Origin: Tubulanus polymorphus
Taxonomy: Eukaryota; Animalia; Nemertea
Length of the DNA stretch: 64,000 bases
Reading direction: 5' to 3'
Assembly: GCF_964204645.1 (NCBI RefSeq)
Contig: NC_134032.1
Span: 7,180,275-7,244,274, forward strand
Part shown: one piece after another, positions 3,146 through 64,000 of the stretch
How positions within the stretch are numbered: the first letter of the stretch is position 1
Layout: the number at the start of each line of letters is the position of its first letter
The notes under the pieces: model-generated
The model's input: only the letters and a program-made list of their open reading frames with translations
The model's database searches: none
What the model was told of the DNA's origin: nothing
Program-made: the position numbers and the translations under genes

Positions 3146-4200
3146 AACAAGAAAGAAATTCTAAAAATGGGCTTGCTGACATGGTTGTACTGAAAGCTTG
3201 CTTGGTGGTTTTGTATTTCTGTAGTAGAATTAATCGAACTTTGAACTGATTGCTTATAGAGCTAAGAGATCGGTGTTGTCTTACATCGTAAATGAAATGT
3301 TACACACGGGGACTTGGAATCGGAATGGTTTTATTGTAGACGTGGACCAAGTTAGTGCAAGCTCTTGGATAGTTGTTATTTGAATATTGCAGTGTCTTAA
3401 CGGAATCTATCATCATGTTGATAATTGCTAGATAACGTATCGGATTTGTTGAAATGATTTTGCATAGAAAAATTTACAGCTGAAAGAAAAACCGTGACTA
3501 ACTCGAGTGACTTCAAGTGAAGAGAAGCCGCACACAAAAATAGATAGGAGCCACGATTTTTCTCTTTAAAATAATAAAGACATTTAGCAAGAGTAAGTTG
3601 CATCTCCTTCAAATGACAATCCACAACGATCATCCGATAAAGTTTACTCCAGAAGTTTATTTCCACCATAGACTACCGGTGGCTCTTTGAAGAGACAGGA
3701 AACCAGTCTTCAATTCAATTCAGAATTTATTTTACAGAAAAGCGGGTTTTAAGGTTTAGATAACATTTAAAATGAAAAATATTAATGTTCATACAGAGAT
3801 TTTCCAAATGGCCGCTAACGAAAGCACCCAATGAAAGTAAAAGAAAATTAAAAGAATTTTTTAAAAACGTGAAAGTAAATGTTTTATTGTGTCAATCAAG
3901 AATGAATTGGATTGTCGGCAGCACTATGCCGCGCATGAATACCAATTTCAAGACTGATCACGCACGCTCAACCGAGGTTGGTATGCGCTGCTGAAATAAC
4001 AAAAACGATTAAACAAAATCATAAAACAATCAAAACGACAACCGATGTAGCCAATATACGAAAGGAACCTAGATTCTATTACTGCATTAAATGTGTGTAA
4101 ATATCAGAGCCCAAGAAAGTTTCTAATGAAAGTTATCGACTTCCCAAGCAAGTTATCAATCCGTGTCAGCAATATGGGCTTGCAAACATGCAAGCCCATG
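3146..4200 (+). mobile_element. Non-autonomous Helentron/DINE-1-like element (HINE)
   Basis: Subterminal inverted repeats ttgctgacatgg (3173-3184) / ccgtgtcagcaa (4161-4172). 3' stem-loop atgggcttgc-aaacat-gcaagcccat (4174-4199), followed by an A-run. An internal segment (~3518-3800) recurs with a deletion at ~21275-21395. Confidence 0.65.
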
Positions 4201-5519
4201 AAAAATCCGTGGTGCTGATGTGTACTTGAGAGATTAACAATATGACTTCATTTTCAGATTTAAAACATCATTACATATACAAACGCACGTGATATAAATT
4301 TCAATGGGGGCCGGATTCAAACAAAAATGACCCAGTTACGGTTAGTAAAAAATCCCCACCACCTGAATAACACTTGAAAGTCGACGAATAACCGATTTTA
4401 ATCAACAAAAAGCTGATTCAATTAGTAAGTAACCAAATAGACGCAAACTATAAACTTGTCAGTAATTTCTTAATTCATTAACCACTAAATTAACCTTACG
4501 TAAGGCGCTATTCTCCCAGCTAGACTTAATACATTGTTTTCGCACCATCATCCCATCAATATATTTTCTTTATAAAAGTTTTCGAGGGAGGTTAAACTGA
4601 ATTCAGCGACTTGGTAATTCGGCGAAGTTCACACACTGGCCTGAATAGAATTAAAGTCTATGAATTGAAAGATTATCTATGCATCCAATGAATTTTAAAT
4701 TTCAAATTTGTATAAAACGATAACTTTGGACAAAAACTATTTTTTGTTTCTAAAATATGAACTATTGGACTTTTACCAACCGTTACCAGGTAAGTATATA
4801 ATGTTAACGTCTCATTTTTAGAGATTACCGTCGCTGTCATCGTTTGTATGTGTAACTGGGGTAGCTCTTTTGCGCTGTTTTTCATTACACAGTCAATGGA
4901 GTTGATACCCTGGGGAAAACCAAACCAACCAAGATCTACACATAAAGCTAGTTGTAGTTAAGTAGGGCGTACGGAACCTGTGATCAGACGACGAAATTGA
5001 ACATCAAAAAATTAATGAATGTGTTCACAGAGGAAGTAGATAAAATATGGGCGAGAGAGGCAATCAGGAACAGAACCAGAATCATAGAATACATCAACAA
5101 TCACATCTCAAACCGAGAACCGGCACAGCAGCGGGGCTGGAAGCCTACACACGGGATACCAGTTGTAGAAACTTCAGGGAACCACAAGACATGGGAATGT
5201 CCTCTATCCCCAGCGGAAAGAGGCAAGAGGGTTAGTGAAGAACAAAAAATGTTTCAATTGCTTAGAGACTAACCATCGTAAAACAGATTGTCGTAATACG
5301 AAAACATGTTGAGAGTGCAAACGAAGACATCATAACAGTCTGCACGAATACTTTCGTTCATTGGATAATAACTGAGGAGACAATCAGAATCAGAATCGCT
5401 ATCAAACAAAACAGCAAATGTAAACCATGTCTGAAAGGAACGTGCCAGTTGTGCTATAAGGCAATAGTGGACAGTTTGAATCGTCATGACCAGCACAGTT
5501 TCAACAGGCACAGATGATT

Positions 5520-35410: not shown

Positions 35411-38075
35411 TTATGGAATCTCTGGGTATTTGAATCCACAATATAACTGATCTACAGCTGGCCAGGTTAATCGGATCATTGAAACGACGCTTGATGGTAG
35501 AATTTTGCGGTTTTTTTTGCCGAGTCTGCCCCAAACCCATCTCACAAAACGTCTGTATGCAATATAACAGAAAAGTCTGAAAATAGAATGGATATACATT
35601 ACACACATTAGCCTTGTATTTTCTGCGATCTCGCAAGTGCCTGCCATTCGGGGTAGGGTATGTTGATTTTTTTTTTGTACAGAGAATTCATTAATAATAT
35701 TGCAAGTTGTATTAATAGTAATAAAGAAGTTTATATCCTGATTTTAAATACAAAATTTAAGTTTATTCCTATTTCTTCATTCGCTTTTCATTTGGACTTA
35801 CTCATGCAGAGGTTCTTCATCACCAATTGGACCAGAGTCAAATGCATAATCATAAAAAGACACTTTGAGCACATCGGGATCCAGGCAGTTAACTATAAAT
35901 CGGTGTACTTCGGTAACGCAAGTTTTGTCTGCAGTTGCCATTATTTCTGAGAGTTTGTGGAACTCTTTGCAACATACACATTCGCAGGGAGTTTGCATTG
36001 GGGAGCAAACATACATGCCAGTGCTGTTTCTACATGAGCACCTAAAATTTTAAAAAAATTGAAAGTAATTTCTTTAGACTGGCTGGAACATTATGAGAGG
36101 TTTGCCTGGCAAAAACTAGTGGCTTTTTACCGGTACTAAATAAATTTAATTTGCATTGAATTGAATATTAGTTACGCGAAATTTACCAACACAAGCCACG
36201 CAGTAACAATTCTTAATGGAAAGTTGTATTTTCCTTATCTTGTAAATTTACATTTCATGATATCTAATTTCACCACGAATTAAAGGCTGGCTTATGTCGA
36301 CAAGCAACGCGACGCCTACCGACTCCTACCGACGCAACTGAGAGCAACCGCTATCGCAGCCCAGCTCGACTGCGCTCCGATTCGCAGCAACTGAGGCCGA
36401 CTAGCGGGATATGGGATCCTCCCAGTTGCTTCCCAGCTGATGTCGGTTGCAATTACTAGCAACTGCAACGGCTGAAATGGTCACGTGATAAGCATTTTGA
36501 GAATAAATTTGAATTATTAGGAAATATACTTCTATTAGAAAAGCTATTTCTTTAAGACTTTGATCTTTCTGATTCTGTTTTGAATACGTGCTAGCGACAT
36601 CTATAAAGATGACCGCTCACACCATAATTATACCAATTTCGTTGCTAGACGTATCGGCCCCACTCCGCGCGGTTGCGCCATTTACGCGAAGCAGCAAACA
36701 CAGACATGGCCACTCTCTCAATTTTCAATGATAGAAATCGTGTGTGCATTTCAATTATTTCGGCTGTTAGGGTTTTAGGGCACAATTTAAGTTGATGATG
36801 TGATATGGCGATGTTAATTAATGATAATTCCGCAGTGAAGCTAGTCACGAACGGTGCCGATTGAGTGTACAGCTGCCAAAAACACTGAAATGTGCGTAGT
36901 TGTGTAACTATTTGCAGTGAATTGCAGACGAAACATGAAGCCTTAACGGCCGTTTAAAAAAAAATTATACCAATCGCAATTGTAAAATAAAAATGAGATA
37001 GAACCTAAGTTAAAATTCTGGCCATTTCTAAAATGTTATTACTAATTCTTAGTCAGTGCCGAACGTTTAGTTTTCCAACAATAATGAGGGGTGGTAGGTA
37101 GTCATGCAATTCAAGTCATCATTTATTGCACGTTACTTCCGTGTTGTTGAAAATCTCGCGAGTCCTGGACCAAACCCCATTGAACAATATAATCTGTGTG
37201 CTGGCCACAAATGCACACAGATCACACTACACTACCCATTACACACACCAGTACCCACAGCTTTCATATATCCATCCAAATATTTAGAGTGTCTTTCTTC
37301 CTGTATCTTCGGTCCAGTCCTCTGCCATGCTGAAGTTTGAACTTCTTGAATTTGAAAGTTTATGACCAATTATGAATGACGCTAACTAGCGGTGATAATT
37401 TGTACTATGTATATGCGGTCTCTCATTGGCTGGAACCCCTCCGTCGCGTCGCAGATGAGCTTATGTCGGCTGCGATCGTAAGCAACTGCCCGCCTACCGT
37501 AGGCCGGAGTAGAACATGGGCAACTAGCCGCATACGGCTTGCGACGAGTCGGTAGGCGTCGCGTTGCCGTCGCAAGCCGGCTTATGTCGAACCGATTGAG
37601 GAGCAACTGGCGGCCTCTCGTAGGACGCTAATCGGCGATAAACCCAGTTGCGTCGGTAGGCGTCGCGTTGCTTGTCAACATAAGCCAGCCTTAAAACTAC
37701 TGAACCGGTGCCCTTCTTTTCGGTGTTGTGTAGGTAGGCCTCGCTGATGTAGCGAATTAGAAACAAGCTAATAATAATAAATATAAACCAATGAACCCAG
37801 AAATGGTCGTCGAAGTATTAATATTATTCATTTTACTATATTTGCTACTGAGTTGTGTTTATTTTGTTCATTTGAACTACTTACCAATCCGTATTGTCTG
37901 CCCTTTGTTCAAATTCTTCTACGCCGCCGTCGTCGTCACTACTACTATTGTCGTCAGATGAACTTGATTCACGGTCGGCTTTGTCGTCAGAATTATGTCT
38001 TTTGACTGGTTCAAACATGTATGGTTGAATATTATTATCAGTGAATTCCAAATCACTGAACCCATCGTCTGACAT
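35411..38075 (-). CDS. Kolobok accessory protein KolX, similar to the P2X7 intracellular ballast domain; 3 exons (~38075-37886, ~36042-35803, ~35577-35411)
   Basis: IQPYMFEP...RADNTDW|CSC...CSPMQTPCECVCCKE...CVT...FIVNCLDPDVL...PLHE|...YIAYRRFVRWVWGRLGKKNRKILPSSVVSMIR..WP...YCGFK, the Cys-rich P2X7-C-terminal-like signature. Intactness not verified. Confidence 0.82.
36284..37691. mobile_element. Non-autonomous PIF/Harbinger element (1408 bp), in the KolX intron
   Basis: ~40-bp TIR AGGCTGGCTTATGT(C/T)GACAAGCAACGCGACGCCTACCGAC. TAA TSD (36281-36283, 37692-37694). Subterminal gcttatgtcg repeats. Confidence 0.93.
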
Positions 38076-50266: not shown

Positions 50267-50947
50267 TCGCGTATCTACGTCATCGGGGTTCCCGGGGAAC
50301 CCGGAAATACCACGGAGTGTTAAAAAAAGCACAATCGATCGATCACAGTTTCGCGTTGTCGAATGTTACACTGTGAGCTGGCAGAATGTACAAGTGCCTA
50401 AATTCGGTACATTTCCATTGGTTAATTTTAATATCTTCAGTAGAAAGATTTTAGCCTGGATTCTGTCATTCTGCAGATTGTCAATCACGAGAGGTGCGGA
50501 TCTGCACTTTTTCCGAACGAGCGTGTGCTACCTTATCCTGAAGGAAGTGGTCCGCCCAGGAGAAAAGACCATTGTTCTTGTTCTTGTTACCACGAAATGC
50601 CACATCCGTCATCGTCGGCAATCCACTCTATTTTCTAGTCTAATTCATGAACAGACTTTGGAGGGTTTGTCCTTATAAAGTAGCCCCATGATTAGGCTAG
50701 GCCTAATTTTAGAGAACAGCATCCGGGCTAGACACAACTTCTACGATTTTTTATAGCCCCAGAGAACCAAAATTAGGCCTATTATCCATCAGTTTTCACC
50801 GTATTTACCATCGATTCGCTTCAACCGCCATGTCGAGAAAGGGCTGGCTCCGGCTTTATTAGAATGAGCGCATCCTCTCCGCTTCAGCACACTGCCATCC
50901 TCGCTTGCCCTAGTCGCCGCACTAATGATAAAAAGGCTAGACAGCCT

Positions 50948-53900
50948 CATTATGAGAATGCCGGTTTGCTAGCGTATCTATTTAACACCCGTATTGCTCG
51001 GGTTAGTTTTACTATCAACGGGTGGCGCTGTATGTAAATTTCACATAAATCAACGACTTTCGGCTATTAGCGGTACTTAAGACCACTTGAAAACATCATA
51101 GTCAATTACGGTAGTAGTGAACATAAAAAGATACAGTACAAAGATACAGTACGGTGTACAGTTAAGGACATGATTCCATAGGACCCATACCAGAGACATT
51201 TTGTTCAGACAAGGACTATTAGTTAAACACTAATCTTCATTTTCAGCAATTAACGATCTGGTGAATTAATTAGTGATTCGGTCTTTCGGTGGTTCGAGAT
51301 AAAATACCCGCAAAATAAGAACCTAACGAACCAGGGCTGACCACAAATTGCCCAACAGATACATTTTCGAAACGATACAATCCAATCATGTTTGGTAACA
51401 AATGTGGCGTGGACCATGGTCTTTTAACTGACCAGTGCATGACCAGTACTGACCATATAGTAAATTATTTGTTTGCAAACAATTAAGTTGTTTGGTGTCA
51501 AATAACTAGATATGATGTGGGCATTAATCTAAAAATTGTTTAACTGACCAATGCTTGACCAGTAGTGACCAGTTACCAGTGCTAACCAGAACCCCCATAA
51601 GTAATTTATATGTTTAGTGAATCCTTCGTCGGTACTACTAGCTCTTACATTTAAATTTGTCGCTTGAAAAAGTCTTGTCCGATTTTTGTTGTAGGTAGCG
51701 AGCTAACTTTGAAATTCCGCTAAAATGCATAAGATTTTTACGTAGGGTTTTGAACGAACAACGTTTCCATTTGTAATTGTAACGTGCGCATTTGAGCCTG
51801 TAACGTGCACATTTCACTCGCGTGAACGTGCGTATCGGTACCAACATGCGAGACTTGTCAAACTTTTACGAACAAGACTTTTATGGTTAATTTTGAGTGA
51901 TCACAACGCTAACCAATAGAGAAAGCTGTAAGTCCTAAGAAAATATGCATTAAGTATAACATATCTTTCAATATAATGATGAAGTATTCAACTGGCCATC
52001 ACAACAATATTTTGACTTATCTTATTGAAAAAACCGGAGTGTTAATGGGAAAACCTTGAATTCGAAACAATTCCACACTCAATCGTTTACTTTGAAAACA
52101 CAATTTGCATTTTGTGGACATGTATTTTTTTCTGCACCAAAAGCATGAAGTATATTATCTTTGCTTGTAAAAATTTGAAATTTTGGGGAAGATTTTTGGC
52201 CTCGTTAACCTGTGAAGACGTCCTTCGTATATTTTCTAAGACCGACCCTTGAAATAATGCTGAGAGTTCCGAGGATAATTTTGGTAGGATGTAAACTTAG
52301 GCCGCTTCGTATCCGTGGATGGTTGCTAATACACAATAATCGTAAGTACCATGAGATTCGATAGAATATCGTTTTTCAATCATACGTACACGAATTATCG
52401 CGATATAAAGATAAATGATATGTTCATATACTTTTTACGTCTTATACTGTATATTTCTTTAGTAGTATAAATAAAGAGTGGATCAGCAGGCCACCTGAGA
52501 CCATTCCACGATCTAAGGTCAGTTGCCAAAAGTTAGTAAGTTTACCAGTGGATAGTTAACATTTATAATGACAATTAAATTTTCATTGCTAAAATAACTT
52601 TGTACTTGTTGACTCAAAAGCAGAGAATTGAAAATACGATAATACGATACGAAAACTCAGTGTACAAATTCAAAAAGATTATCTCTAGTGAGAGATCGAA
52701 CGTTGTGTCGTAATTTTCTAATAATAAAACATGGTTTGAAATTTGAAATGTGTACATAGTTGATCTTTTTCAGTGTATTTAGTCATGTATCATATTGGAT
52801 ATGGTTAATTTAAACTATCTTTTGAGAAACGGGTCCCAGAGCTGTATCCTTTACTCCTGTAATAGAGGATGCAATCTATTTGCGACAAACAGCTAGGGCA
52901 AATAGCTAGAAAAGGTAACAATAGTGCATTGGCAAACTTAGAGCAAGCGTACATTGGTTGTTTAGGTTTTTCGAAGGGGAGAATTTGTGGGAAAATTAAT
53001 CATTACTAAGATATATCCGTGGCGAGCTTTTCCAGGGATTTAAAAAGTTGAGCTGTACACAAGGAATTTTGTGTAGTCCAATATCCGTGATTACCTCTGG
53101 CGTGGAGAGATACAATCTAAAACCAACCCTAGAGTCAAATATTTTACCACAATTTTTTATGATCAATAAAAAGATTGAGTAATAGACATTCAAACAGTAT
53201 TATCTAAATTCCACTCCATTTTAAACTCATTCATCTCTTCACAAACTCCAACTTGTTGAACAGTCCACATTAAAATTAGGGACCACTATTCTTGCTCATC
53301 TACACTGGCTACCAATCTAACAAAGGATTAAATTTGAGTGTTTGATGTTATAACAATATCAGACTGAAGTATGGATTCGGTTTCTACTTTTTAATTGAAC
53401 ATTTATATCACATATTGGGCATCATTTTTACCAGTATATATTGAATAACCTATCCATATATCATCTTCAATTTTATAAAATCTGACTTTTGAGATACCAT
53501 TCAATCAATGCATTCACATGCGGTCGTCGCTTTCAATAGCCACCACGGACTGGCTCCTTATTATTTCTTTGGTGATACCATTGGCGGACGATCCCACACG
53601 TTTCTTGCTCCAGCCCTAGAATGCTCAATATTCGTCATGAACCCCGATTTGAGTTTAAATTCAAAATACTCATAAAACACACCTGTTAACTAGATTACTC
53701 TAAAACACCTTTATGTGCAAGAATCAGTGAAATTGGCGCTTTATCAGTTGTATTCATCATTCGTACCCACGAATCTCGTATCGTATCCTATTAATGTGGA
53801 GACCCATCCTCGTAAAGAGAATGAATAGGCTCTGTTGCGTTCATATCATTTGATATGAGGCTACGTGTCATCTTCAATTGAAATCACGTTGTTTTTTTAA

Positions 53901-56624
53901 GGGTGGGCGAGAATATATTCTTATGTTTTTGTTTCTCTGAATGTTGCTATTTAAGAGTTCAATAATTTCAGTCTACCAAACAAAGGATTTTCCGTATGTT
54001 TCGTGACATGTTTTTCCATAACCCTAGGAGAGCATTTTAGGTATTTTTTGCGGATGACCGAAAGCTGCTGTCCCTTTCTAGTAATTTGATTATATCCGTC
54101 GAAATCTAAATTCTAAGAAGGAATCAGGCATATCTTCTTTATTGACTAAATATGAACTCAACAACAAGTGACACTCCCTTCAAAGGCGCCGAAGTAAAAT
54201 CATGTGTCGAGTGGAGATGATATTGTGTCAGAATTTCTTCAAAATCGGAGAAAATTGAATATTTTAAAAATAATCATTTTACATGCATGTTTAAATCCGT
54301 TATAACTGGAGAAATTTTCATGAAAAATATCTATGGAATCAGCGAAATGTAATTAAGAGGAATACTATGTTTAAAAAGTTATCAAAGACAATTGAAAAAA
54401 GTTTTCTGAATTCGTCAACTGTTAAACTAGTAACAACCAGATGTGTTCCCATTAAACCACCGACCGCGAGCCGAGTCGATGTGAGATGTGCCCTACACTG
54501 AAAATCTCAAGTGCTATACAACCGGTTTTTTAGGTGCCTCTGAATGTCGGCCGTTAAAAAACTGAACAATTCCCAATTGGAAAGGGCCTACGTAGTTAGA
54601 GAAAATTCAAGATGTGTATATCGTGTGAGATACAGGCTCCATATTTCATGTGCGTTTGGAATTTAACCTTGTTTATAACGAAACACGCATGTATTTATGC
54701 TATTTTAGATTTAAAAAGAGCGCACGAAAGTGTTTCATGAGACCCGCAAATAACGTCAAGTTATTTATGCATTTTTGATTTATATGAATAAATTTCGCTT
54801 CGAAATCTTAAAATTTCTCAGGTGGATTATTCAATAAATTCACAACAGTCCATTATGGATTAGTTTGACGCCAATCGTTCTTTTAAAGATCTTTCTTTCT
54901 CGAAGAAAGATTTTCTTAAAAACTTTGATTATGGCGAATCTTTTATGTGTCCGATAGTTAAACCTTCGGGTATTATACTAGAACACAAATTTTTAAAGAT
55001 ATTCATAACATACTGAAGGATATCACAGGTTATACCCGAACATATGCAGTTGGATAGATCTTTTTGTTTCGACTCGCATGCAACAGTAAAAACGGTACTT
55101 GATATAATAAGTGAACTTCATCATTGATATTTTCACTAATCTACTTGAATTCCAAAAAAGAACTGACAATGAAAAAGGGTTACAGCTGTGACTGATATCG
55201 CTCCAAATTTCAATTCCTATGAACACTTTTAATATAAAGAAAACTATTAACGAAACAGTTTTTAGAGGCGAAGAATCCGCGTTACCATCGAATTTTCAAA
55301 ACTTGAAGGAATGGTTAATGCCTCGGTGACCACTGGTCTAGTACGCGGTTTTCTGAAATGAAAGTGGCCAAGTCTAAAGAACAACTATTGTATCACATGA
55401 TTTCAAATATTAGGAACCCAATGCGTTTAATGATTTAATTAATTGGTATCGCGCAGATTGGTTGAAAGACGGGTGTTAGTCACCTTGTGATTTAATTGTT
55501 TTTCATGCATCGATTAATTAATCTTATTATAACTTATTTGTAGGGCGCATCCCGCAAACATTTTCTATTCGTTGAGTTTTCAAACGCAGTACTGTTCAGA
55601 TGATTCGAGTCAAGTAGTAAAAAAGTTTATGTATTAGCATTACTATGCAGTGAAAATAACGCACTGCGGCAAGTGAGGTGCTGTGATCCAGATGTGTAAC
55701 CCATTTATGGGTAATAAATTTCCATCATGTCAACGCCATTCAAAAACAGTAGCAAAACTTTCTGCTGGTTTCTAGAAATAGCAATACGACGACAAGCACT
55801 TTCGAATTCGACCACGATATTTGAGAAGTTTCACTGGTGGTCAGTGATGGTCAATTTATGAATTTTAATGGCGAATCCTTTCTAGTTTCACACCAAAAGC
55901 GGTACCGGTATATCGTTCTTTCAAGAAGTTTCAATTGGTCAGTGGTGGTCAGTGATGGTCAATTTATGAATTTTCAATGGCGAATCCTTTCTAGTTTGAC
56001 ACCATAACGCGGTATATCGTTTTCATATTCGAGAAGTTTGAATTGGTCATTGGTGGTCAGTGATGGTCAGTGATGAATTTGCAATGATGATTCCTTAGAG
56101 GTTTGAAAACAAACATTACATGATAAATTTCCGAAATTCGAAGTCAAGTGTTCAGACTCGGGGATATCTCAATTGGTCAGTTACTGACCATCATGGTGTC
56201 ACCATTGTGGTCTATAGCTCAAATGAAACATGTGGAACCGACGAAGGGGCCCAAAAGCGTTAAGTCATTTCCTGGAGTGACGTGATCCAAAAATGCCCTA
56301 ACTGGAAAAGGCAGTCTCTCAATTGGATGAAACCAAATCGGACAGGACAATTAAAATTTGGGAAGGCCACAGGTAGTGGTATTTCTACGAAGCCCACGCG
56401 GTGAGCGTATTATTATGAAATCTTTTTTTAAACCACCATGTACCACGAAGTAATAAGCATCGTTGTAAGCACTTGAAACAGCCATTAACCACTTGAAACT
56501 GTCAGATCAAACATCATACCGCATCCCCGCAAAGAGGGGTGGTTCAGCAAACCGGAGTTTTCATTAGCCTCTCTAGACTACCCCGCCAGTACGGGTAGCC
56601 GAGCAAACCGAAAAACTCATAATG
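50948..56624 (+). mobile_element. 5677-bp non-coding TIR element, copy 1 (CAT...ATG termini)
   Basis: Ends CATTATGAGAATGCCGGTTTGCT / AGCAAACCGAAAAACTCATAATG. T on both flanks. TGACCA arrays near the left end and TGGTCA arrays near the right end. No long ORF. Confidence 0.9.
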
Positions 56625-57857
56625 TAACAGACCGCATCTTCACCCGTCAAGGGATTCGAACCCACTACGCTAAAGCAGTTCGCCGAACTAGCTGGTGGAA
56701 GCGAGTTTGGGAGTGATACCGGACCTCTGGCAAGCGAGGATGAACAGATCGTCACACAGAGATCCTGAGGCTGGTTTTATAGACTGGTTTCAGCTGTTAA
56801 CCTAAATTAATATTTTTTCAATTGAGTCAACCCCCAGGTTTTTTTTATCTTAAAATATGGATTGACCTTCAGCCCTGTGTACGGATTCTGTGGCCGGGCA
56901 CGGTAACCAAAACAGCTTCTCCATAACATTTGGATTTTGCGGGGGACAAGCACTCCGGCGCAGCTGTGCTTGTCCCGCCTCCACCCAACTTGGTCCTCCA
57001 TACGTCCTGGATCCTCTCGGGGCGCCGCCTATCTCTTCGTGCCCTCAGTCACCGTTGGTATGGGTACGTCCAGGTCCGCTAGTCCTCCTCTTGGAGGCGT
57101 GTTATTCAGCTGGAACCCTCTGCCGGATAAAATGTCGGTAGCGTGACTCCGGCCTCTTCTCAGCTGACCGGATTCCTCGTGTCCTGAAAAGTTATGACTC
57201 CGACTCTCTTTCTCACTCCAAACGCGTCCACGATAACTCAAAAACGGTATTTTTAATTCAAAATATTAACTGTATGTATTTTGCAGCTTCAACGGATTAA
57301 ATCCGAAGGGGTACCTCGCAATAATTTCTAATATACATTATTTACATAGCCACGGTCGTTTCACATTTCAACTATATACACTAGGCTCCTGGACAACGCG
57401 GGGTACGAGACAAACACGGCGTCCGGGGACAACCATGTCCACCGGGGACACGTCGACCGCGGGCCGGACATCAATACGTAATAAGGTAAGCGTAACTTTA
57501 GTTAGTTACCTAATCGTTGGTGGTAAGCTGTTTATAATCGGATGGGCTTAAACCAACCATGTGATTTGAGAAAATATCCAATCCTGAAACTAAACCACAG
57601 TCAGGTCACTGACTAGCGTAACTGGTATCGACGTTCAGTCCGAGCGAACGGTTTCTTGAATCTTGCGCGCTGCTTGCCTTTTATAGAGCGCGATTGACCC
57701 CCCATGAATAACCGGACGAGAAACATCGAACAATTTCGAAGGACATTTAATAAACAATGTTACGCGCAAAAGGTAGAAACTTTCTCATGTCCAATCGACA
57801 GTACCGGTGGCTCCGTCACTAAGCAATAGTAAGAACTAATGCTTTTGTAGACTGGTT

Positions 57858-60800
57858 CATTATGAGTTTTCCGGTTTGCTCGGCTACCCTTACTGGCGGG
57901 GTAGTCTAGAGAGGCCAATGAAAACTCCGGTTTGCTGAACCACCCCTCTTTGTGGGGGTGCGGTATGATGTTTGATCTGACAGTTTCAAGTGGTTAATGG
58001 CTGTTTCAAGTGCTTACAACGATGCTTATTACTTCGTGGTACATGGTGGTTTAAAAAAAGATTTCATAATAATACGCTCACCGCGTGGGCTTCGTAGAAA
58101 GACCACTACCTGTGACCTTCCCAAATTTTAATTGTCCTGTCCGATTTGGTTTCATCCAATTGAGAGACTGCCTTTTCCAGTTAGGGCATTTTTGGATCAT
58201 GTCACTCCAGGAAATGACTTAACGCTTTTGGGCCCCTTCGTCGGTTCCACATGTTTCATTTGAGCTATAGACCACAATGGTGACACCATGATGGTCAGTA
58301 ACTGACCAATTGAGATATCCCCGAGTCTGAACACTTGACTTCGAATTTCGGAAATTTATCATGTAATGATTGTTTTCAGACTACTAAGGAATCATCATTG
58401 CAAATTCATCACTGACCATCACTGACCACCAATGACCAATTCAAACTTCTCGAATATGAAAACGATATACCGCGTTATGGTGTCAAACTAGAAAGGATTC
58501 GCCATTGAAAATTCATAAATTGACCATCACTGACCACCACTGCCCAATTGAAACTTCTTGAAAGAACGATATACCGGTACCGCATTTGGTGTGAAACTAG
58601 AAAGGATTCGCCATTGAAAATTCATAACTTGACCATCACTGACCACCACTGACCAATTGAAACTTCTTGAAAGAACGATATACTTGCCGCAGTGCGTTAT
58701 TTTCACTGCATAGTAATGCCAATACATAAACTTTTTTACAACTTGACTCGAATCATCTGAACAGTACTGCGTTTGAAAACTCAACGAATAGAAAATGTTT
58801 GCGGGAAGCGCCTACAAATAAGTTATAATAAGATTAATTAATCGATGCATGAAAAACAATTAAATCACAAGGTGACTAACACCCATCTTTCAACCAATCT
58901 GCGCGATACCAATTAATTAAATCATTAAACGCATTGGGTTCCTAATATTTGAAATCATGTGATACAATAGTTGTTCTTTAGACTTGGCCACTTTCATTTC
59001 AGAAAACCGCGTCCTAGACCAGTGGTCACCGAGGCATTAACCATTCCTTCAAGTTTTGAAAATTCGATGGTAACACGGATTCTTCGCCTCTAAAAACTGT
59101 TTCGTTAATAGTTTTCTTTATATTAAAAGTGTTCATAGGAATTGAAATTTGGAGCGATATCAGTCACAGCTGTAACCCTTTTTCATTGTCAGTTCTTTTT
59201 TGGAATTCAAGTAGATTAGTGAAAATATCAATGATGAAGTTCACATATCATATCAAGTACCGTTTTTACTGTCGCATGCGAGTCGAAACAAAGAGATCTA
59301 TGCAACTGCATATCTTCGGGTATAAACTGTGATATCCTTCAGTATGTTATGAATATCTTTAGAAATTTGTGTTCTAGTATAATACCCGAAGGTTTAACTA
59401 TCGGACACATAAAAGATTCGCCATAATCAAAGTTTTTAAGAAAATCTTTCTTCGAGAAAGAAACATCTTTAAAAGAAGGATTGGCGTCAAACTAATCCAT
59501 AATGGACTGTTGTGAATTTATTGAATAATCCACCTGAAAAAATTTCGGTACTCGAAAAACGCCTATTCATATAAATCAAAAATGCATGAATAACTTGACG
59601 TTATTTGCGGGTCTCATGAAACAGTTTCGTGCGCCCTTTTTTTAAATCTAAAATAGCATAAATACATGCGTGTTTCGTTATAAACAAGGTTAAATTCCAA
59701 ACGCACATGAAATATGGAGCCTGTATCACACGATTTACACATCTTGAATTTTCTCTAACTACCTAGGCCCTTTCCAAATGGGAATGGTTCAGTTTTTTAA
59801 CGGCCGACATTCAGAGGCACCTAAAAAACCGGTTGTATAGCACTTGAGATTTTCAGTGTAGGACACATCTCACATCGACTCGGCTCGTGGTCGGTGGTTT
59901 AATAAGAACACATCTGGTTGTTACTAGTTTAACAGTTGACGAATTCAGAAAACTTTTTTCAAATGTCTTTGATAACTTTTTAAACATAGTATTCTTCTTA
60001 ATTACATTTCGCTGATTCCATAGATATTTTTTCATGAAAATTGCTCCAGTTATAACGGATTTAAACATACATGTAAAATGATTATTTTCAAAATATTCAA
60101 TTTTCTCCGATTTTGAAGAAATTCTGACACAATATCATCTCCACTCGACACATGATTTTACTTCGGCGCCTTTGAAGGGAGTGTCACTTGTTGTTGAGTT
60201 CATATTTAGTGAAACAAGAAGATATGCCTGATTCCTTTTTAGAATTTAGATTTCGACGGATATCATCAAATTACTAGAAAGGGACAGCAGCTTTCGGTCA
60301 TCCGCAAAAAATACCTAAAATGCTCTCCTAGGGTTATGGAAAAACATGTCACGAAACATACGGAAAATCCTTTGTTTGGTAGACTGAAATTATTGAACTC
60401 TTAAATAGCAACATTCAGAGAAACAAAAACATAAGAATATATTCTCGCCCACCCTTTAAAAAAACAACGTGATTTCAATTGAAGATGACACGTAGCCTCA
60501 TATCAAATGATATGAACGCAACAGAGCCTATTCATTCTCTTTACGAGGATGGGTCTCCACATTAATAGGATACGATACGAGATTCGTGGGTACGAATGAT
60601 GAATACAACTGATAAAGCGCCAATTTCACTGATTCTTGCACATAAAGGTGTTTTAGAGTAATCTAGTTAACAGGTGTGTTTTAGGAGTATTTTGAATTTA
60701 AATTCAAATCGGGGTTCATGACGAATATTGAGCATTCTAGGGCTGGAGCAAGAAACGTGTGGGATCGTCCGCCAATGGTATCGCCAAAGAAATAATAAGG

Positions 60801-63800
60801 AGCCAGTCCGTGGTGGCTATTGAAAGCGACGACCGCATGTGAATGCATTGATTGAATGACATCTCAAAAGTCAGATTATATAAAATTGAAGATGATATAT
60901 GGATAGGTTATTCCATATATACTGGTAAAAATGATGCCCAATATGTGATATAAATGTTCAAATAAAAAGTAGAAACCGAATCCATAATTCAGTCTGGTAT
61001 TGTTATAACATCAAACACTCAAATTTAATCCTTTGTTAGATTGGTAGCCAGTGTAGATGAGCAAGAATAGTGGTCCCTAATTTTAATGTGGACTGTTCAA
61101 CAAGTTGGAGTTTGTGTAGAGATGAATGAGTTTAAAATGGAGTGGAATTTAGATAATACTGTTTGAATGTCTATTACTCAATCTTTTTATTGATCATAAA
61201 AAATTGTGGTAAAAGGCTAAACAAAAATGATACCTTGTTTCTCCGCAGCGGCCGGGTCATTTTAGTAAAATATGATAAAATTTATAAACAGTTCATTTCT
61301 ATAGCGGCCAGGTCTGTTGTGGTAAAATTGATCACGATTTTAAAAAAAGTAATGTATGGGGTAGATAGGCGGCCGGCCGGGTCAACATTTAAGCTCAGCA
61401 GAGCGGAGAAACAAGGTATCAATTTTTTTTAGCCAAATATTTGACTCTAGGGTTTTAGATTGTATCTTTCCACGCCAGAGGTAATCACGGATATTGGACT
61501 ACAGAAAATTCCTTGTGTACAGCTCAACTTTTTAAATCCCTGGAAAATCTCGCCACGGATATATCTCAGTAATGATTAATTTTCCCACAAATTCTCCCCT
61601 TCGAAAAACCTAAACAACCAATGTACGCTTGCTCTAAGTTTGCCAATGCACTATTGTTACCTTTTCTAGCTATTTGCCCTAGCTGTTTGTCGCAAATAGA
61701 TTGCATCCTCTATTACAGGAGTAAAGGATACAGCTCTGGGACCCGTTTCTCAAAAGATAGTTTAAATTAACCATCATCCAATATGATACATGACTAAATA
61801 CACTGAAAAAGATCAACTATGTACACATTTCAAATTTCAAACCATGTTTTATCATTAGAAAATTACGACACAACGTTCGATCTCTCACTAGAGATAATCT
61901 TTTTGAATTTGTACACTGAGTTTTCGTATCGTATTATCGTATTTTCAATTCTCTGCTTTTGATACAACAAGTACAAAGTTATTTTAGCAATGAAAATTTA
62001 ATTGTCATTATAAATGTTAACTATCCGCTGGTAAACTTACTAACTTTTGGCAACTGACCTTAGATCGTGGAATGGTCTCAGGTGGCCTGCTGATCCACTC
62101 TTTATTTATACTACTAAAGAAATATACAGTATAAGACGTAAAAAGTATATGAACATATTATTTATCTTTATATCGCGATAATTCGTGTACGTATGATTGA
62201 AAAACGATATTCTATCGAATCTCATGGTACTTATGATTATTGTGTATAGAATCAATAATGAGCAACCCTCCACGGATACGAAGCAGCCTAAGTTTACATC
62301 CTACCAAAATTATCCTCGAAACTCTCAGCATTATTTCAAGGGTCGGTCTTAGAAAATATATGAAGGACGTGCTCACAGGTTAACGAGGCCAAAAATCTTC
62401 CCCAAAATTTCAAATTTTTACAAGCAAAGATAACATACTTCATGCTTTTGGTGCAGAAAAAAATACATGTCCACAAAATGCAAATTGTGTTTTCAAAGTA
62501 AACGATTGAGTGTGGAATTGTTTCGAATTCAATGTTTTCCCATAAACACTCCGGTATTTTTCAATAAGATAAGTCAAACTATTGTTGTGATGGCCAGTTG
62601 AATACTTCATCATTATATTGAAAGATATGTTAGACTTAATGCATCTTTTCTTAGGCCTTACAGCTTTCTCTATAGGTTAGCGTTGTGATCACTCAAAATT
62701 AACCATAAGTTTGAATTCTCACTGATCTACTACATCTCTATAACAAAAATATATTTCATATCAGGCAATTAGCTTTGATTTGTGGTCAGTGGACAGCAGC
62801 TACGAAACATTTCAAACTACTACATTATCATTCCATCTATTCATGTATATATAATATGATATGATATCTTCTTTGTTCAGTTTAAAAGTCTTGATCGTAA
62901 AAGTTTGACAAGTCTCGCATGTTGGTACCGATACGCACGTTCACGCGAGTGAAATGTGCACGTTACAGGCTCAAATGCGCACGTTACAATTACAAATGGA
63001 AACGTTGTTCGTTCAAAACCCTACGTAAAAATCTTATGCATTTTAGCGGAATTTCGAAGTTAGTTCGCTACCTACAACAAAAATCGGACAAGACTTTTTC
63101 AAGCGACAAATTTAAATGTAAGAGCTCGTAGTACTAACGAAGGATTCACTAAACATATAAATTACTTATGGGGGTTCTGGTTACCACTGGTAACTGGTCT
63201 GTACTGGTCAAGCATTGGTCAGTAAAACAATTTTTAGTTTAATGCCCACATCATATCTAGTTATTTGACACCAAACAACTTAATTGTTTGCAAACAAATA
63301 ATTTACTATATGGTCAGTACTGGTCATGCATTGGTCAGTTAAAAGACCATGGTCCACGCCACATTTGATACCAAACATGATTGGATTGTGTCGTTTCGAA
63401 AATTTATCTGTTGGGCAATTTGTGGTCAGCCCTGGTTCGTTAGGTTCTTATTTTGCGGGTATTTTATCTCGAACCACCGAAAGACCGAATCACTAATTAA
63501 TTCACCAGATCGTTAATTGCTGAAAATGAAGATTAGTGTTTAACTAATAGTCCTTGTCTGAACAAAATGTCTCTGGTATGGGTGCTATGGAATCATGTCC
63601 TTAAACACCGTACTGTATCTTTGTACTGTATCTTTTTATTTTCACTACTACCGTAATTGACTATGATGTTTTCAAGTGGTCTTAAGTACCGCTAATAGCC
63701 GAAAGTCGTTGATTTATGTGAAATTTACATACAGCGCCACCCGTTGATAGTAAAACTAACCCGAGCAATACGGGTGTTAAATAGAAACGCTAGCAAACCG

Positions 63801-63814
63801 GCATTCTCATAATG
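57858..63814 (-). mobile_element. 5957-bp inverted copy 2 of the same element
   Basis: Collinear reverse complement of copy 1 (ORF-track pairs 51638/62919, 55023/59129, 52996/61163). Same termini, T on both flanks, with private insertions. Confidence 0.9.
61215..61434. mobile_element. 220-bp MITE with GG termini and 3-bp TSD (Zator- or PIF-like)
   Basis: TIR GGCTAAA.AAAA.TGATACCTTGTTTCTCCGC. Absent from the equivalent site in copy 1 (~53138-53150), which shows that AAA was duplicated. Confidence 0.9.
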
Positions 63815-64000
63815 TGTCGGTCACACCTTCAGCTATTCTGACTGCGAATGCAGTATGGCGCAGAATTGGACATGCGACCAGTGTAATGTCATCCCCGCTC
63901 GCCAGGGGCCCGGTATCGCTCCCGAACTCGCTTCCACCAGCCCCCTGGCCTCACGAAGCGTGATTTCATTACTGGCGCTGTTGCGCATGACGTCATACAT

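Follow-up and report, generated by a model that had tools for sequence, protein, structure and literature searches.

A young non-coding transposon family of Tubulanus polymorphus with a one-base-pair target site duplication

The length of a target site duplication (TSD) reflects the spacing of the two active sites of the transpososome and is a main character in the classification of DNA transposons. Among the big cut-and-paste elements, the shortest duplications, 2 to 4 bp, belong to the CMC group. PIF elements duplicate 3 bp, and Spy elements insert between AAA and TTT with no duplication. To our knowledge, a 1-bp duplication fits no described eukaryotic superfamily, the recognised ones duplicating 0, 2, 3, 4 or more bases, and a 1-bp TSD was not mentioned anywhere in a full-text search of about 8.4 million papers. 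The duplication of hAT elements is 8 bp long, or 5, 6 and 7 bp in hAT5, hAT6 and hAT7 (PMC9004415, PMC12730594). The stretch analysed here (the window; 64,000 nucleotides, C8:7180275-7244274) belongs to the 268-Mb, 77-contig genome of the nemertean Tubulanus polymorphus and contains two large copies of one element, whose family was counted genome-wide. In our view, and with a probability of roughly 70%, these copies are independent insertions of a young, non-autonomous class II cut-and-paste transposon of about 5.7 to 5.9 kb, which has terminal inverted repeats (TIRs) and a 1-nt stagger at its target.

The copies, the target bases next to them and the spacer between them have the following positions in the window.

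50947, no strand: duplicated target T to the left of copy 1, twin of 56625
50948-56624, + strand: copy 1, 5677 bp, non-coding, used for the checks of ends, flanks, open reading frames (ORFs) and Pfam matches
56625, no strand: duplicated target T to the right of copy 1, twin of 50947
56626-57856, no strand: spacer between the copies, a mosaic of older dispersed repeats outside the element
57857, no strand: duplicated target T beside the right-type end of copy 2, twin of 63815
57858-63814, - strand (inverted): copy 2, 5957 bp, with its right-type end at 57858 and its left-type end at 63814
63815, no strand: duplicated target T beside the left-type end of copy 2, twin of 57857

Both copies run from CATTATGAG to CTCATAATG, and they form collinear inverted repeats with 96 to 99% identity. 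CATTATGAG matched the window at five places, 50948(+), 56616-56624(-), 57858(+), 63806-63814(-) and 36089, against 0.73 expected; the match at 36089 is a chance one. Copy 1 is flanked by ...GACAGCCT on its left and TAACAGAC... on its right, and copy 2 by ...GACTGGTT and TGTCGGTC... in the same order. An earlier note on this DNA had stated that the copies share their ends, lack a duplication of 2 to 10 bp and each repeat a single T, all of which is the case in the window. Its description of a large non-coding TIR transposon also held: the shared ends are precise, and copy 1 has no ORF of at least 70 amino acids, the longest having 69. The ORFs of copy 1 matched no Pfam family, and the region of the copy gave no Rfam or tRNA match.

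The junctions were analysed in 17 copies whose ends were paired by their coordinates, and flank logos were built from 31 unique left and 32 unique right flanks. The two bases that adjoin the element, one at the end of the left flank and one at the start of the right flank, were identical in 14 of the 17 paired copies (binomial P = 3e-6). Random re-pairing gave a mean of 4.6 matches, and none of 100,000 re-pairings reached 14. The single-base duplication proposed from the two window copies was found without them as well, in 12 of the remaining 15 pairs (binomial P = 3e-5), and in comparison with three of four paralogous empty sites the occupied site had exactly one extra base. The duplicated base was T in five cases, A in four, C in three and G in two. 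Four pairs showed an apparent 2-nt match, and these were all homodinucleotides (three TT and one CC), the pattern expected when a single base is duplicated within a run of that base. The empty sites were available because four insertions sit in other repeats, the paralogs of which lack the element. The gain was 1 bp in the comparisons L001/L060 (G), L007/L051 (C, in a CCC run) and L020/L054 (C, seen in three paralogs). The single-base target duplication is real; it can involve any base and occasionally comprises two.

At one further locus, C7:12654565-12660416 (L010/L047), the flanks repeat a stretch of 10 to 13 nt, GTCGCAGTGA, with ATA between. Either the target had this tandem repeat beforehand, or the insertion made an unusually long duplication that includes filler.

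Judged by its sequences, the family is young and has about 140 end-bearing copies. The terminal 23-mer, CATTATGAG-N5-CGGTTTGCT, occurs 284 times in exact form in the genome (137 left-type and 147 right-type) and not once in the reversed control. The best 40 matches to each 210-nt end were 98 to 100% identical, the terminal 900 nt were about 97% identical in pairwise comparison, and fragments with 85 to 90% identity represent older members. All 60 loci fetched around end matches were collinear with copy 1; their flanks all differed from one another, and every fetched junction was precise. Paired ends lie 5.5 to 8 kb apart, and the copies together account for about 0.3% of the genome. Its copies are concentrated in one central block per large contig, for example at 12.6-18.4 Mb of the 32 Mb of C1 and at 12.3-20.8 Mb of the 27.8 Mb of C3. 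In a search for metagenome relatives, 13 sequences matched the 18-base end pattern, none of them being similar beyond the pattern.

Many copies are deletion derivatives, since a marker at element position 3474 was found at only 80 places in the genome. Several of the internal deletions carry filler DNA, of 3 nt, 14 nt (templated from adjacent sequence) or 36 nt. Filler at internal deletions is a sign of interrupted gap repair after excision, as in P and Ac/Ds elements. Longer copies were considered as possible autonomous versions and ruled out: all 60 end loci are collinear with the non-coding copy, and the extra length of longer copies consists of other elements nested in them, namely, a Pao-type long terminal repeat (LTR) element, a long interspersed nuclear element (LINE), a Penelope-like fragment and a Polinton-like element. 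One copy, at C9:6511870-6532938, is enlarged to 21 kb in this way. It contains a Pao/BEL-type LTR retrotransposon, a LINE with endonuclease and reverse transcriptase, and a fragment with an ORF that, judged by eye, is possibly of the GIY-YIG (Penelope-like) type. Another copy is interrupted by a 17.2-kb AT-rich insertion (C1:12621535-12638736), the junctions of which overlap by 6 bp of the host element. Two proteins are encoded by this insertion, which is probably a Polinton-like element. One is a U1-type zinc-finger protein, and the other is a protein-primed type-B DNA polymerase (PF03175, E = 8e-21) with a C-terminal part that, inspected by eye, resembles an intein.

A 23-nt marker of the left arm (position 362) is repeated in head-to-tail order about every 1.56 kb. 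Such runs were found on C11 (339615-344314, 418396-420154, 498546-500135, 2901871-2903436 and 3233487-3236821) and on C9 (985336-986920), apparently as tandem arrays that arose by amplification of a part of the element.

An alignment of the ends identified three modules, A, B and C, that both ends share, and the left terminal 23-mer is nearly invariant in 31 copies. Counted from the tip, module A covers positions 1-9 and module B positions 15-23. Module C is a 20-nt internal palindrome, ACCCGTAyTG..CGGGkTAGT (ACCCGTATTG..CGGGTTAGT). In copy 1 the parts of the ends are arranged as follows.

50948-50970, + strand: left terminal 23-mer, with module A (CATTATGAG), the spacer AATGC and module B (CGGTTTGCT); found in exact form 137 times genome-wide
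50987-51006, + strand: module C of the left end, positions 40-59, 16 nt after module B
51338-51571, + strand: left subterminal array, seven TGACCA hexamers at element positions 391-619, within 116-nt repeats
55838-56179, + strand: right subterminal array, nine TGGTCA hexamers (the complement of TGACCA) at element positions 4891-5227
56578-56596, - strand: module C of the right end, positions 29-47, 5 nt after module B
56602-56624, - strand: right terminal 23-mer, with modules A and B and the spacer TTTTT in copy 1

In most copies the spacer of the right-type 23-mer is TTTTC. The distance between modules B and C is 11 nt longer at the left end than at the right end, a difference of about one helical turn. 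The right array lies within 108-nt tandem repeats (55831-56086), and the TGACCA and TGGTCA arrays occupy mirrored positions 0.4 to 0.8 kb inside each end. Mirrored hexamer arrays of this kind resemble the transposase-binding subterminal regions of hAT and CACTA elements, and by analogy a transposase would bind them here. Hairpins at the element ends were discarded as a feature: the DNA did not fold convincingly better than its shuffles, with a z value of -0.9 at the left end (indistinguishable) and -2.1 at the right end.

No autonomous partner lies in the window, as the earlier note had said. Elsewhere on C8, three elements are bounded by the left-type 23-mer at both ends; they are located on the chromosome arm, not in the central block.

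C8:3148757-3155713: candidate partner, 6957 bp, left-type tip at both ends
C8:3527796-3534728: candidate partner, 6933 bp, left-type tip at both ends
C8:2337770-2342762: candidate partner, 4993 bp, left-type tip at both ends

A marker search found neither the position-362 nor the position-3474 marker in these three elements. They have their tips in common with the family and their bodies not, as expected of an autonomous partner. They are the best partner candidates and may be the autonomous partner itself or a second family that uses the same tips. On the chromosome arm of C3 (7615587-7636540), two right-type ends facing outward lie 20.9 kb apart. They may belong to two copies that stand head to head, or they may bound one large element whose tips are both of the right type.

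The enzyme scans used the Pfam models for hAT, CACTA, PIF, P and RAG1; the enzyme may also be of a kind beyond these five, such as Tc1/mariner, MULE, piggyBac or one of the families that have no Pfam model (Sola, Zator, Kolobok, Academ, Chapaev and Mirage). For hAT (PF05699), 121 candidates were scored genome-wide and 79 matched, none of them inside the three C8 elements. The CACTA model (PF02992, Transposase_21) gave five hits in the genome, none inside these elements, and Chapaev and Mirage enzymes may escape it. Of 371 candidates for PIF (PF13359, DDE_Tnp_4), 150 were scored, and none lay inside the three elements. The P-type RNase H model (PF21787) had 17 hits, none inside candidate elements. 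RAG1 (PF12940) had no match in the genome, a weak negative because a control search found nothing either.

Taken as a class II TIR element, the family has inverted terminal repeats at precise boundaries shared by many dispersed copies and, by comparison with paralogous empty sites, a target duplication (1, 1, 1 and 2 bp). A transposase supplied in trans would bind the modules and the hexamer arrays, excise the element and connect both of its 3' ends to the target, at phosphates that lie one nucleotide apart on the two strands. Filling of the gaps at this 1-nt stagger would then leave a duplication of 1 bp. Several points weigh against such a cut-and-paste element with a 1-nt stagger. The fourth empty site, L018/L041, which is nested in an older sibling copy, shows a gain of 2 bp (TT), and 3 of the 17 pairs deviate, two having no repeated base and one having TTAA on both sides. 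The stagger may vary slightly, and flank exchange by recombination between near-identical copies could explain the deviating pairs. The empty sites are paralogs, not alleles, and the pairs cover only 17 of the about 140 copies. No transposase is linked to the family, and its catalytic class we can only infer. Finally, hAT and PIF elements pile up in the same central blocks as the family, and this central pile-up may reflect retention rather than targeting.

A flanking repeat that varies between 0 and 2 (possibly 4) bases could also come from a recombinase of the tyrosine or serine site-specific type, with a circular intermediate crossing over within one or two shared bases and no staggered cut. 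The models scanned found no DDE-family Pfam domain in the candidate partner elements, which agrees with such an enzyme. However, comparison with the empty sites reveals that a base was truly gained, for which the circle junction would have to carry a matching base, yet all four bases occur as the repeated one. The family also has TIRs with repeated modules, mirrored subterminal arrays and deletion derivatives with filler, which characterise DDE cut-and-paste elements rather than Crypton, DIRS or IS607-like elements. We therefore consider a recombinase improbable.

Alternatively, the element might have been pasted blunt into a break that the host repaired, a 1-nt 5' overhang giving the 1-bp repeat by fill-in and end joining. 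Nuclease cuts with a 1-nt stagger, such as staggered Cas9 cuts, are known to yield 1-bp duplications once they are filled in, and the length of the repeat is not perfectly fixed. End joining would, however, usually nibble the element ends, whereas the exact 23-mer is kept at 284 termini and no imprecise junction was fetched. Host repair as the source of the repeat has little probability for us.

The earlier note had gone further and proposed a dimeric, sequence-specific enzyme that recognises GWCNG-N5-CNGWC and cuts its centre with a 1-nt stagger. The four G-W-C-N-G half-sites on which this was based are present at equal distance in both window copies. At that distance, however, the motif was absent from the unique flanks of all other copies (29 left and 30 right), and the flank logos were flat, with no position above 0.23 bit (31 left and 32 right flanks). 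The absence of the motif from other copies, which the note itself had named as refuting its proposal, was thus what we found. The rebuilt window targets are self-complementary around the centre at only 3 of 10 and 4 of 10 positions. Over 14 rebuilt targets, 49 of 140 pairs were complementary, against 34 after re-pairing (P = 0.002), but this slight excess hardly exceeds the counts of 25 to 47 obtained with centres shifted by a few bases. Dyad symmetry centred on the duplicated base is therefore no more than weakly indicated. We take the shared GWCNG half-sites of the window copies to be a coincidence; the proposed palindromic target is refuted, and we regard an enzyme that recognises it as very unlikely.

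The two window copies lie tail to tail, 1233 bp apart, with their left-type ends outward and a T at all four flanking positions, and C7 holds another pair with outward left-type ends and a similar span (12.9 kb), but that the window pair arose as a single inverted segmental duplication, or moved whole as a composite of copy 1, spacer and copy 2, is scarcely credible: the flanks are only about 60% alike, and unrelated beyond the short G-W-C-N-G resemblance, while the copies are 96 to 99% alike. A 174-nt segment after element position 936 is missing in copy 1 and present in copy 2 and most other copies. Copy 2 is not the nearest relative of copy 1 (as partners they rank 10 to 18 of 31), and each has closer relatives elsewhere. 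By this indel and these relatives, an inverted duplication was ruled out, and the copies are independent insertions. The spacer is found complete nowhere else in the genome; the pair therefore did not move as one unit, and the composite was ruled out as well. The spacer contains a unit of about 600 nt (about 80% identity) and one of about 120 nt (about 92% identity), each present at many loci.

Two modules of about 55 nt, at window positions 56634-56688, 56691-56743 and 63889-63941, flank both window copies, and one of them holds a stretch resembling a tRNA T arm, GGGATTCGAACCC. They recur within less than 1.5 kb of at least eight other copies, several times in locus L054, and look like a repeat of the central blocks resembling either a short interspersed nuclear element (SINE) or a satellite.

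Returning to the family as a whole, 8 of the 64 unique flanks adjoin sequence of the same family, corresponding to seven independent nested insertions. Five of the seven lie at most 160 nt from an end of the host copy (20, 22, 45, 136 and 160 nt; chance P = 9e-6). Inverted pairs with short spacing recur as well, at 11, 255, 325 and 1233 bp, the last being the window pair. New copies land in or beside their siblings far above chance. This clustering may be caused by transposase bound at sibling ends (tethering) or by short-range hopping. At two loci on C4 (10836859/10837184 and 13427283/13427609), two left ends stand head to head with the same 325-bp gap. One locus may be a segmental duplicate of the other, or insertion beside a sibling end may have given this arrangement more than once.

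When compared with described groups, the family resembles hAT elements (Ac/Ds, hobo, Tol2) in its 5'-CA...TG-3' tips, its short TIRs, its subterminal hexamer clusters, its large non-autonomous deletion derivatives with filler, and its local or nested insertion, for which double Ds is a parallel. The hAT terminal consensus is YARNG, whereas the tip of the family is CATTA, and the family duplicates 1 bp. A link to hAT, as considered in the earlier note, is accordingly not supported: tips and duplication length both depart from the hAT pattern of YARNG and 8 bp, and the three C8 elements contain no hAT dimerisation domain. The 1-bp "hAT1" group that the note had mentioned was not confirmed in the literature search, which found only hAT5, hAT6 and hAT7 described as named by duplication length. 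CACTA/CMC elements (EnSpm, Mirage, Chapaev) are likewise large and rich in subterminal repeats, and the family tip CATTATG is CACTA/CACWATG-like apart from one base, the third. That base differs, however, and the family usually duplicates 1 bp.

Tc1/mariner/pogo and ISL2EU elements (2 bp) and Spy (none) share a very short stagger with the family, which together with them gives a series of 0, 1 and 2 bp. Tc1/mariner/pogo elements need a TA target, whereas the family duplicates any base and has no TA at its junctions; Spy uses an AAA/TTT insertion site, whereas the family has no target motif. With TWA, 2-bp or no duplication, respectively, PIF/Harbinger, ISL2EU and Spy all differ from a family that duplicates 1 bp of any base. 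The Drosophila P element has the tip CATGATGAAATAAC, to which the tip CATTATGAGAATGC is similar, and P elements likewise home to the vicinity of their siblings and give rise to deletion derivatives that contain filler, but they duplicate 7 to 8 bp and not 1 bp. Transib/RAG elements are alike by analogy only, through a heptamer-like tip and an inner module offset by about one helical turn (compare the 12/23 asymmetry), and Transib duplicates 5 bp against 1 bp in the family. Helitrons and Helentrons make no duplication, insert at A/T or T/T and have 5'-TC and 3'-CTRR ends, in contrast to the CA...TG ends with TIRs and the arbitrary flanking base of the family.

The family thus works like a hAT- or CACTA-style non-autonomous element, yet it fails the duplication-length or terminal tests of each group tested. 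It is possible, though less likely than not, that the enzyme represents something new. A more specific proposal, which we put forward only tentatively and hold to be doubtful, is that the copies are non-autonomous members of an undescribed superfamily or deep branch, characterised by attack at positions 1 nt apart, an inner module offset by a helical turn and homing to sibling ends, with the transposase residing in the approximately 6.9-kb elements C8:3148757-3155713 and C8:3527796-3534728. The family is a caution for those annotation pipelines in which TIR elements without a TSD of at least 2 bp get rejected. If the enzyme is new, it could be of interest for tools that give nearly scarless integration. 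The family itself is a natural system for studying how a transposase functions with a minimal stagger.

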